From the sequence record NC_070952.1: DNA of 64,000 bases. One strand, 5' to 3'. The notes beneath the pieces were generated by a model. The model saw only the letters and a program-made list of their open reading frames with translations, was not told the DNA's origin and searched no databases. Positions 16,232-19,277 of the stretch are shown here, piece after piece; position 1 is the stretch's first letter, and the number at the start of each line of letters is the position of its first letter. Position numbers and translations under genes: made by a program.

Positions 16232-16346
16232 AGTTACCTCTATTTCGAAATAGTCTTATTACAAAGATAATAAGATGTCTCATACGTTATCCATCCTAGG
16301 ACACATATGGAACGAGCTCATATGATCAAAGAGAAAACCATGCATA

Positions 16347-16377
16347 AACCCCCACCCCCGTGAGGAGGTGGGGGGTT
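16347..16377 (-). terminator. GC-rich terminator-like hairpin
   Basis: AACCCCCACCCCC-GTGA-GGAGGTGGGGGGTT; stem is better on the minus strand (C-A becomes G-U), where T-rich sequence follows. Confidence 0.6.
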
Positions 16378-16379
16378 AA

Positions 16380-17375
16380 GATATTGTTACCCAGCTTTGG
16401 TGTTTATAAACACCCTAGAAAAGACTCTGCGTAAATAACACGGGTGCCCCCGATCCATTACGAAAATCCTTAATAGGCTGTCTACTCTACTGATTGACAA
16501 CTTCTCCCTTGGCATAGGGAGCGGACTGTTTATTATCCACAAGGTACCGCTTGCCAACGGGCCATAGGAATAATGCTGACGTTCCTCTAGAATCGTAGAT
16601 TGAGGCTGCTCCTCACAGTTAAGGCGGAGCGATTCATGACGGATCTGTCAGGAGTTGGAGTCTCCAGATAACAGAACCCGTTTCGTCACTTTGTTTGTCA
16701 TCGCGGACTCATCAGATGGTTACGATGCCCCCACCACGGGAGAAATCCACTCCATATCACGGAGAGCAGATAAGGTTGAGAATCTTGATATCACCCAGGA
16801 AGACTAGCAAGTCTCCTGCTTTAGCCGCCTTTGATGCAACGTAAATGTGCTCGGCGGTTACCCTACGGTTTTCGTTCAAGATTCTCAAGAGGTTGTACCA
16901 ATGGTTGAAACACTGTGAGCGCTTATCCGTCAGGTATAATTAAAGCTCTATCTGGATATCAGCCACTGGTACAAAGAGGTTAACGACGACGGATCATCGT
17001 TAAGGAAAGGGCGCAACTTACCCATTTCTAAAGATGTTGTATCCTAATGGTGTTCCCATGGAATGTTTCGGGTTCGTTTCCAATTACTCGGCGTTATCGC
17101 CAAAGTGTCCTGAGCTTGGACGAAGGGAACCTATTCTCTTTAGACGCGTTGCAATGATACAGTAATTTTCAAACTATTGTATCGCCCACCAAGAGCTACT
17201 TCAATTAGTGAACTTAAGTCACCGTTCACTCTTGGATTTAACCCAGCAGTGCAACCTGCCGAGCATTGCCCTCGTTACTACCCACACCTGGATAACAAGG
17301 GTCTTACAAACGAATATAACGGGGTGATGAAACCATGTCGGTCCGCAGACCGGCAATCAGTTACACTCGAATGAA
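16380..17375. ncRNA. Candidate ~1-kb structured non-coding RNA, family not recognised
   Basis: No credible ORF; many nested helices (13-bp 16776-16788/16876-16888; 16893-16908/16959-16974; 16822-16829/16853-16860; 17027-17034/17137-17144); less AT-rich than other intergenic spacers. Confidence 0.65.
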
Positions 17376-17388
17376 TTACATAATATAC

Positions 17389-18006: not shown

Positions 18007-18055
18007 AGTTAGTAGTAGTGGTCGGAGATCAAAATAGAAATAGGGTATTGCTACC

Positions 18056-18193
18056 CTACACGTTTAACTTATATCCTTCTTTAACTTTGGTCATACTGAA
18101 TGCACCACCATCGCCATCAAGGTATAAGGTTTTTTCAGCATTCTGATTTTGGCGTCGGATCTTTTCTTTCAAAGAAGTCTTTTTCTTTTTCAT
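18056..18193 (-). CDS. Small basic protein (45 aa), not in ORF track
   Basis: MKKKKTSLKEKIRRQNQNAEKTLYLDGDGGAFSMTKVKEGYKLNV; fills the operon gap. Confidence 0.5.
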   Translation of the reverse strand: MKKKKTSLKEKIRRQNQNAEKTLYLDGDGGAFSMTKVKEGYKLNV

Positions 18194-18220: not shown

Positions 18221-18358
18221 TTAGATTTTACAACCTTCGCAGTCGGCTTCATCACCGATAGCAGCGGCTTCTTTGTTTGCCTCGTCCTGACGCTCTTTAT
18301 TGCGAGCTTCAGCTTCATCGAGACCATCAAATGCCAAATCGTCTAAATCGAAATCCAC
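18221..18358 (-). CDS. Small acidic CxxC peptide resembling the class I RNR alpha C-terminal redox tail (45 aa), not in ORF track
   Basis: GTG start with GAGGA RBS inside the grx 3' end; MDFDLDDLAFDGLDEAEARNKERQDEANKEAAAIGDEADCEGCKI. Confidence 0.7.
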   Translation of the reverse strand: MDFDLDDLAFDGLDEAEARNKERQDEANKEAAAIGDEADCEGCKI

Positions 18359-18362
18359 AGTT

Positions 18363-18617
18363 CTATTCCTCTACTTCGGGCTTATTAGGCTTATTAAGAT
18401 AAGACACCAAATCAGTATAACCACCGACATGAACATCATCAACAAAGATCTGAGGAACGGAAGTAACAGGACCACCCACGATCTTTTCAAGACCTTCTTT
18501 ACCGAGGCCTGTTTCAATGATATCAATATATTCGTTATCGACATCGCGTTCCTCTACCAACTGTTTAGCGCGTTTACAAAAGACGCACTGATCCTTACCA
18601 TAAATTACAACTTTCAT
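18363..18617 (-). CDS. grx: Glutaredoxin (Grx/NrdC-like)
   Basis: 84 aa; IYGKDQCVFCKRAK active site, SVPQIFV, GGYTDL motifs. Confidence 0.93.
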   Translation of the reverse strand: MKVVIYGKDQCVFCKRAKQLVEERDVDNEYIDIIETGLGKEGLEKIVGGPVTSVPQIFVDDVHVGGYTDLVSYLNKPNKPEVEE

Positions 18618-19191: not shown

Positions 19192-19277
19192 TGGAGCCAA
19201 GTACAGGATTCGAACCTGTGAAGCCTTACGGCAGGGGATTTGCAATCCTCTCGCTTTGCCCACTCACGAAACTTGGC
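19192..19277 (-). tRNA. tRNA-Cys(GCA) with long variable arm, encoded CCA
   Basis: GCCAAGT TT CGTGAGTGGGCAAAGCG A GAGGA-TTGCAAA-TCCCC TGCCGTAAGGCTTC ACAGG-TTCGAAT-CCTGT ACTTGGC T CCA. Confidence 0.93.

Follow-up and report, generated by a model that had tools for sequence, protein, structure and literature searches.

What does a 45-codon gene that ends like the redox tail of a ribonucleotide reductase (RNR) do beside a glutaredoxin (Grx) gene in a jumbo phage? The DNA analysed, a stretch of 64,000 nucleotides from sequence record NC_070952.1 that we call the window, matches positions 1–64000 of Erwinia phage AH04 (MZ501267, 262,639 bp) with 100% identity. AH04 belongs to the genus Meadowvirus, has Erwinia billingiae as its host and is annotated as a phiKZ-like jumbo phage, with a PhuZ tubulin, split multisubunit RNA polymerases and phiKZ-type internal head proteins. 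The gene in question, AH04_15, follows the grx gene AH04_16, and the best reading of its product, the miniprotein, is as a putative free-standing copy of the C-terminal tail of the class Ia RNR alpha subunit, NrdA. As set out in two papers (PMC4078304, PMC5704485), the active-site disulfide of each class I RNR turnover is reduced by a Cys pair on the flexible alpha tail, and this pair is itself reduced by thioredoxin (Trx) or Grx.

The open reading frame (ORF) is confirmed as a real gene that is conserved and under strong purifying selection. A search with the single sequence returned homologues of 45–46 residues in 17 clusters, 80–100% identical, in which the motif D-C-x-G-C-K-I is invariant; a preliminary description of the locus had asked whether the CxxCKI ending is conserved in homologues, and it is. 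Among five DNA copies from related jumbo-phage contigs, the pairwise ratio of non-synonymous to synonymous substitution rates (dN/dS) was 0.05–0.14 at dS values of 0.3–2.6, with synonymous sites close to saturation. A profile search extended the family to 209 clusters at E ≤ 0.01, and 35 clusters, defined at 50% identity, reached E ≤ 1e-3 in an exhaustive hidden Markov model (HMM) search of 1.8 billion representatives. When back-translated, D-C-[DE]-G-C-K-I-stop occurs once in the window, against 0 occurrences expected from 100 shuffles. The miniprotein also matches PHROG 10239 (8e-6, residues 2–45 against positions 6–47 of the 47 in the profile), a phage family without functional annotation.

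Other collections were silent about the family. Low-complexity noise apart, neither phage nor bacterial members matched Pfam or NCBIfam, a sequence search of the PDB with the miniprotein returned nothing even at E ≤ 10, and the PADLOC models of defence and counter-defence systems matched neither the miniprotein nor the Grx, four neighbouring genes or the bacterial homologue described below. An AlphaFold2 (AF2) model of the miniprotein consists of a single helix over residues 10–41, with confidence dropping towards the C-terminus and no globular fold, and so predicts a non-globular, tail-like peptide. Three parts can be distinguished: an N-terminal acidic-hydrophobic motif (MDFDLDDL..), the central helix and the C-terminal DCEGCKI.

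E. coli NrdA, whose sequence was retrieved by way of the phage nrdB match, ends in DDGCESGACKI. The likeness to this ending that was pointed out in the preliminary description is real, although the spacing of the cysteines differs, being Cx2C in the miniprotein and Cx4C in E. coli. We defined an NrdA tail as a flexible, acidic segment with a pair of Cys residues 2–4 residues apart at the extreme C-terminus, followed by K/V/T and I/L, and as a sequence module the miniprotein fits such a tail. A scan of IMG/VR for D-C-[DE]-G-C-K-I-stop found 112 stretches, where a rough estimate predicts ~2 by chance. Classes were assigned for the 80 loci listed: 11 are full-length phage NrdA proteins (~755–781 residues) that end in exactly this heptapeptide, and 31 are stand-alone or fused tail modules. 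The tails of phage NrdA proteins in general look similar. Across 80 viral nrdB loci, the NrdA encoded next to nrdB nearly always has an acidic stretch before a final Cx2C and two residues; ~70 phage NrdA tails fit this pattern of an acidic tail, a terminal Cys pair and two last residues, and many of the tails open with a G-E-I/V-D-I/L-D-x-L motif.

The specificity of the likeness was measured on all 3548 ORFs of these 80 nrdB loci. The miniprotein-family HMM matched 25 of the 75 NrdA ORFs and 5 of the 3473 others (Fisher p 2e-39), and every NrdA match stops at the last residue of NrdA. For three NrdA proteins, on contigs of 358–378 kb, the alignment covers positions 6–45 or 9–45 of the profile and includes the N-terminal D-L-D-x-L motif; thus the miniprotein resembles the whole flexible NrdA tail and not the Cys pair alone. 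The resemblance to the class Ia alpha redox tail is therefore upheld both by the heptapeptide shared with the 11 phage NrdA proteins and by a profile specific to NrdA C-termini. The miniprotein is not itself an NrdA: it has 45 residues and no Pfam match, where an NrdA has a catalytic ten-stranded barrel, an ATP-cone and active-site cysteines.

The remaining class in the IMG/VR scan, 38 of the 80 loci listed, is one near-identical 133-residue ORF, rich in Ser, Arg and Cys and ending in DCEGCKI (L015, L018, L021 and 35 more IMG/VR loci), which recurs in prophage-like contigs and in one Enterobacter metagenome-assembled genome (L137). By its composition it looks like a conserved gene read out of frame or in antisense, and it was therefore rejected as a multiplied chance match.

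If the miniprotein is an alpha tail, an obvious place to look for its partner is among the RNR genes of the phage. Outside the window, AH04 encodes AH04_199, which scores 726.7 bits against the class Ia NrdB model NF006576 (cut-off 346) and is 78% identical to E. coli NrdB (72–74% nucleotide identity between the genes). The alpha-binding tail, ...SYLVGQID...DDFQL, is kept in its E. coli-like form, and by sequence AH04_199 classifies as a class Ia RNR beta subunit. A tblastn search of the complete genome with E. coli NrdA found no nrdA. The preliminary description had suggested checking whether the nrdA of this genome had lost its Cys pair; the outcome is stronger, AH04 having no nrdA at all and only a host-like nrdB. 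It also disposes of the miniprotein as a fragment of an adjacent nrdA, an explanation rejected since E. coli NrdA matches nothing in the whole AH04 genome.

The same combination is seen in a phage of another genus, Erwinia phage RAY (Agricanvirus), which carries a miniprotein (RAY_108) and a class Ia NrdB (RAY_88), with no NrdA detected by whole-genome tblastn anywhere in its 271 kb. The C-terminal tails of both the AH04 and the RAY NrdB are host-like, and in a proteome of a RAY-family phage obtained by mass spectrometry the beta subunit was detected and no alpha subunit was named (PMC6690015). By comparison, nrdA adjoins nrdB in 52 of the 55 viral loci with enough flanking sequence, and an orphan nrdB is unusual, being found in 3. 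A beta subunit and an alpha tail without an alpha subunit is a pattern that points to the host NrdA as the probable working partner.

Two further observations concern the nrdB genes themselves. Three IMG/VR contigs of 52–78 kb (L254, L255 and L256) encode the closest relatives of the AH04 NrdB among the viral loci retrieved (71–76% identity). The 10 kb upstream hold no nrdA, and a tail module is absent from the 10 kb to each side; these are further orphan beta subunits, in mid-sized phages. In RAY, the last 24 residues of NrdB are encoded a second time, with 75–83% identity, at L131:10056–10127 (72055–72126 of the record), directly after the homing-endonuclease gene RAY_89, which itself follows nrdB. 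This duplicate looks like the footprint of an endonuclease insertion near the 3′ end of nrdB.

The second partner suggested by the locus is the Grx. AH04_16 contains the Pfam Glutaredoxin domain (4.7e-14) and passes the NCBIfam GrxA equivalog model NF008401 (90.9 bits, cut-off 84), whilst its score against TIGR02183 (75.9 bits) is under the cut-off of 106.5. Its nearest solved structures are those of E. coli Grx1 (1EGO, 1GRX and 1QFN; best 1.8e-17). These matches place it, by sequence, in the GrxA family of Grx1-type glutaredoxins; weak matches to models of Grx-NrdB fusions (PRK12759, PHROG 86) were also obtained. PDB entry 1QFN holds E. coli Grx1 together with a free 25-residue peptide, NrdA 737–761, and a detached NrdA tail is thus a competent Grx1 ligand.

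The miniprotein gene adjoins grx in AH04 and, as had been proposed for checking in other phages, in four related jumbo contigs. In locus L024 the order is reversed, the miniprotein gene lying upstream of grx with a spacer of ~450 nt. In Pantoea phage Survivor and in cluster P0122 the Grx bears the tail module as a C-terminal extension: the last 47 residues of the Survivor fusion, which ends in DCKDGCAV, align with the full length of the AH04 miniprotein at 53% identity. A dedicated search for further Grx-tail fusions found one cluster only (P0122). The coupling to Grx claimed in the preliminary description is thus kept in either gene order and becomes covalent in Survivor and P0122. In an AF2 model of the Survivor fusion, the Grx domain has a predicted local distance difference test (pLDDT) score of 90–95 and the tail is of low confidence and partly helical.

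Two details of the Grx proteins were noted in passing. The active site of the AH04 Grx lacks the classical Pro and Tyr of the CPYC found in L024, in the Survivor-like P0122 and in E. coli Grx1. The annotated start of the Survivor ‘glutaredoxin’ (L002:2593–3087, 164 residues) was probably placed 32 codons too early; the Grx domain starts at an internal Met, and the AF2 pLDDT is ~50 over the first 32 residues.

The family is not a phage invention. Many of the profile matches were 43-residue proteins encoded on bacterial chromosomes. In a motif scan of bacteria with one genome per species, at least 80 loci matched, and ~70 of the 80 listed are this 43-residue chromosomal gene, in Erwiniaceae, Yersiniaceae and neighbouring families (Pantoea, Erwinia, Tatumella, Mixta, Izhakiella, Kalamiella, Serratia, Rahnella, Ewingella, Rouxiella, Chimaeribacter, Budvicia, Leminorella, Hafnia, Sodalis and Acerihabitans). 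The gene is part of the core chromosome, lying between DUF808 and DUF2158 genes in Pantoea and between ylaC and a Na/H exchanger gene in Serratia, and the copies examined are outside prophages. Each has its own −10-like box ~35–45 nt upstream of the start. A search of 5,426 E. coli genomes with the DNA of the miniprotein gene gave no match, the sensitivity being limited by a query of 132 nt. Co-regulation of the chromosomal gene by an NrdR-type mechanism was considered and rejected, no motif being common to it and the E. coli nrdA upstream region. In view of the chromosomal homologue, the phage miniprotein gene seems to be an auxiliary copy of a small gene of the host, just as the phage nrdB is a copy of host nrdB.

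Among phages, stand-alone modules are also encoded by other Erwinia jumbo phages (Wellington-like, Y3 and AH06), by 50-kb myoviruses (Pantoea phages PSKM and AAM37, Xanthomonas phage DIBBI) and by Proteus phage Myduc. Genes of nucleotide metabolism or replication are frequent neighbours of the module: those for ThyX (6 loci), dCMP deaminase (3) and thymidine kinase (3), as well as MazG and a primase-helicase. In the T7-like Salmonella phage KKP 3828 the module is C-terminal to a Cys-rich segment. This protein (Autographiviridae; L004:2800–3084) has 94 residues, with four Cys within ~15 N-terminal residues followed by a complete tail module, and its gene lies just upstream of an 814-residue gene in a DNA-metabolism region; no function is named for any gene in the 6-kb stretch read.

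A separate resemblance concerns the other end of the miniprotein. Its N-terminal motif (MDFDLDDL.. in AH04, DDIFEFDIDA in bacteria) resembles the acidic C-terminal tip (..MDFDDDIPF) of the single-stranded DNA-binding protein (SSB) of PSKM, the comparison being between L124:26255–26350 and window positions 18331–18358. Binding of partners to SSB depends on the free C-terminal end, and true mimicry is doubtful because the miniprotein motif is not C-terminal.

How might such a peptide work? We tentatively propose, at somewhat less than an even chance, that the miniprotein is a free alpha tail that can be reduced by Grx or Trx and works in trans on the host NrdA. In it, a helical spacer would join an acidic motif of the docking type to a redox pair, Cx2C-K-I, at the C-terminus, and the Cys pair would alternate between dithiol and disulfide. 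The reductant would be the co-encoded GrxA-type Grx, using glutathione, or host Grx1 or Trx in phages that have no Grx of their own. Like NrdA's own tail, the miniprotein would enter the NrdA active-site pocket, here in trans, and would help to re-reduce the active-site disulfide, most likely as an electron feed. AH04 encodes an NrdB, a Grx and an alpha tail, that is, accessory parts of an RNR without the catalytic subunit, and this kit, with the alpha-binding tail of its NrdB intact, may raise or uncouple the output of deoxyribonucleoside triphosphates (dNTPs) from host NrdA during infection. What we infer here is that Grx reduces the miniprotein, that it acts on NrdA and that the effect is stimulatory. 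The free electron shuttle put forward in the preliminary description is partly supported. Inhibition or regulation would fit the sequence data almost as well as stimulation; an electron shuttle is favoured because the gene neighbourhoods and the orphan beta subunit point to making dNTPs, not to blocking their synthesis.

Several observations weigh against this proposal. The redox activity, the binding to NrdA and the effect on RNR are predictions from sequence comparison, and the host NrdA has a tail of its own, so that it is hard to see why a second one should be needed in trans. On the bacterial chromosomes the gene is not beside nrd, trx or grx genes, and no 16-mer from the region upstream of E. 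coli nrdA recurs above the shuffled control upstream of 69 of the chromosomal genes. The AF2 model of the Grx-tail fusion gave no confident docking of the tail onto the Grx. Pantoea phage PSKM carries the module, yet a search of its genome found no NrdA, NrdB or Grx; the N4-like phage phiEaP8 and IMG/VR loci encode the module fused to a Phage_gp49_66 domain, and it ends several proteins of 90–223 residues that belong to no family. Given the module's presence in phages without RNR or Grx genes and its fusion to unrelated domains, a model has to hold with host proteins as the only partners. Finally, the likeness to NrdA was demonstrated in the focused ORF set and not in the library of 1.8 billion proteins, where the miniprotein profile found no NrdA at E ≤ 1e-3. 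Since the likeness is short and compositionally biased, common descent of the miniprotein and the NrdA tails, though likely, is unproven.

The same evidence allows the opposite direction of action. A tail mimic that competes with the NrdA tail for Grx or Trx, or for the active-site pocket, would restrain RNR, by which phages would reprogramme host dNTP metabolism and bacteria would tune their own RNR. The NrdA tail and nucleotides do vie for the same pocket (PMC11903788), and the free tail peptide of 1QFN binds Grx1. The presence of the module in phages without RNR genes, and of a chromosomal gene that stands alone behind a promoter-like −10 box, would also suit a regulator. There is a precedent in yeast Sml1, a small intrinsically disordered RNR inhibitor without a tail-like Cys pair, which in the work of Zhang et al. 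in 2007 was reported to interfere with the R1 C-terminal domain. However, AH04 and RAY invest in an NrdB of their own, which in the RAY family has been detected by mass spectrometry (PMC6690015), and to block an enzyme that the phage supplements would be contradictory. With the module placed among dNTP-producing genes, and its fusion to Grx suggesting productive electron flow and not blockade, we consider an inhibitor or regulator unlikely.

A wider role, as a general Grx- or Trx-recruiting tag or redox switch that is not specific to RNR and docks through the N-terminal acidic-aromatic motif, would account for the occurrence of the same ~40-residue module at the ends of unrelated proteins (those with Phage_gp49_66 or Cys-rich domains and those of 90–223 residues without a family). 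It would also sit easily with the chromosomal copies that have no nrd context, and the likeness of the N-terminal motif to the end of PSKM SSB could be taken as a hint of docking, although that motif is not C-terminal in the miniprotein. Such a tag is harder to reconcile with a resemblance that singles out NrdA tails and is anchored at the C-terminus, with the fact that phages of two genera pair the module with an orphan nrdB, and with the nucleotide-metabolism neighbourhoods; we rate it as more unlikely still. Acidic residues before a terminal CxxC can bind metals, but a Zn-, Fe- or Cu-binding or otherwise non-redox acidic peptide with a convergent likeness to NrdA is highly improbable: the likeness may be short, biased in composition and without an NrdA at E ≤ 1e-3 in the large library, yet a lone CxxC provides only two ligands, the identity to NrdA ends includes the flanking D and K-I, and the miniprotein is fused or linked to a dithiol Grx.

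The trans-acting alpha tail can be extended to a broader claim, which we regard as doubtful when taken as a whole. A diffusible alpha-tail miniprotein might constitute, in Enterobacterales outside Enterobacteriaceae and in many of their phages, a third redox component of class Ia RNR, placed between Grx or Trx and the NrdA active site. The nucleus-forming Erwinia jumbo phages that have only nrdB would then co-opt it, AH04 with a dedicated Grx, and would run the host catalytic subunit on a private electron supply.

Table 1. Features of the grx-miniprotein locus, in window coordinates
Feature	Position	Strand	Remarks
Miniprotein gene, AH04_15, 45 codons	18221–18358	minus	GTG start; C-terminus ...DEADCEGCKI-stop
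grx, AH04_16, GrxA-family (Grx1-type) dithiol glutaredoxin by sequence, 84 residues	18363–18617	minus	Active site CVFC
GAGG Shine-Dalgarno sequence of the miniprotein gene	18368–18371	minus	Within the last grx codons; GTG 9 nt downstream
AH04_14, small basic ORF	18056–18193	minus	Accompanies grx and the miniprotein gene in relatives (L024:1440–1583)
Terminator-like hairpin	18040–18059	minus	Immediately 3′ of AH04_14; consensus match only

The layout of the locus (Table 1) agrees with the preliminary description in the coordinates and strand of both ORFs, which were exact, and in the ribosome-binding site (RBS) inside the 3′ end of grx, which is correct because the GAGG sits in the last grx codons. 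The miniprotein ORF had been called unannotated, which is mistaken: GenBank MZ501267 lists it as AH04_15, a hypothetical protein. Between the grx stop codon (TAG) and the miniprotein GTG lie 4 nt, and since the two ORFs are in different frames, initiation of the miniprotein should be independent. Programmed frameshifting or readthrough joining the two products in AH04 was considered and rejected: the miniprotein frame is closed by a stop 5 codons ahead of the GTG, no slippery re-pairing is available to the P-site codon that precedes the grx stop, and the GAGG RBS is well placed. AH04_14 had no family match in searches of Pfam, PHROG or PADLOC-type models. Terminator-like hairpins in the region are no more numerous than in shuffled controls; the one after AH04_14 is likely to be the 3′ end of a grx-miniprotein-gp14 transcription unit.

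Some other features of the surroundings are recorded here. A tRNA-Cys (GCA) of 86 nt (19192–19277, minus strand) lies just upstream of the gp18-gp17-grx-miniprotein-gp14 cluster; in the equivalent position upstream of its Grx-tail fusion, Pantoea phage Survivor has tRNA-Asn and tRNA-Ser (L002:2043–2211). Between AH04_12 and AH04_13, ~1.16 kb (16232–17388) contains no annotated gene and no ORF of more than 65 residues. This gap is 82% identical over 1168 nt to the related jumbo contig L059 and 74–87% identical to others, in contrast to the coding genes beside it, which are near synonymous saturation. It is a candidate for a large non-coding RNA or structured element, for which a search of Rfam gave nothing convincing.

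How far does a trans-acting alpha tail resemble systems already described? Like the tails of class I RNR alpha subunits (E. coli NrdA ~737–761 and the phage Cx2C tails), the miniprotein is acidic and predicted to be flexible and has a Cys pair and K-I at its end, and Grx1 is known to bind the NrdA tail as a free peptide. Unlike these tails, it is a separate product of 40–50 residues, with its own start and RBS and no catalytic body, and it occurs in genomes without nrdA. GrcA (YfiD), named as a parallel in the preliminary description, is a stand-alone glycyl-radical spare part of pyruvate formate-lyase, which replaces the damaged, cleaved segment and folds into the enzyme. Both are small free proteins that duplicate a C-terminal functional segment of a large radical enzyme and are proposed to act on that enzyme in trans. 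In contrast to GrcA, the miniprotein would be a disordered redox shuttle, the tail of the host NrdA is presumably intact, and the sequences are unrelated; no Pfam or NCBIfam match to the glycyl-radical domain of pyruvate formate-lyase was found, and the comparison is offered as an analogy only. The parallel with Sml1 is likewise one of analogy. Both proteins are small and largely unstructured and would act where the Cx2C tail at the R1 C-terminus regenerates the active site; Sml1, however, inhibits and has no tail-like Cys pair, and Pfam, NCBIfam and PDB searches with the miniprotein showed no homology to it. Closer in arrangement are the Grx-NrdB fusions (PRK12759, bifunctional glutaredoxin/ribonucleoside-diphosphate reductase subunit beta; PHROG 86), in which a Grx is also coupled to a part of RNR, with a shorter electron path. 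Here, by contrast, the partner of the Grx, by fusion in Survivor and by adjacency in AH04, is a putative detached alpha tail, which would be the Grx's own substrate. No description of a free-standing alpha tail was found in curated families, in solved structures or in literature searches on the motif and the concept.

In every turnover of a class I RNR the alpha tail re-reduces the active site, a step that has always been regarded as intramolecular or intradimer. A separately encoded tail is found in at least ~70 bacterial species and at least five unrelated phage lineages; if our reading is true, the conservation of a separate tail would imply that the half-reaction is open to supply or control in trans, and it would explain the puzzling phages that have an RNR beta subunit and no alpha subunit. 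It would also represent a new type of auxiliary metabolic gene, encoding a detached appendage of an enzyme and not an enzyme. PHROG 10239 and an unannotated family of bacterial small proteins are given a name and a testable hypothesis, and the miniprotein may be an unrecognised part of the DNA-precursor supply in cells and phages.

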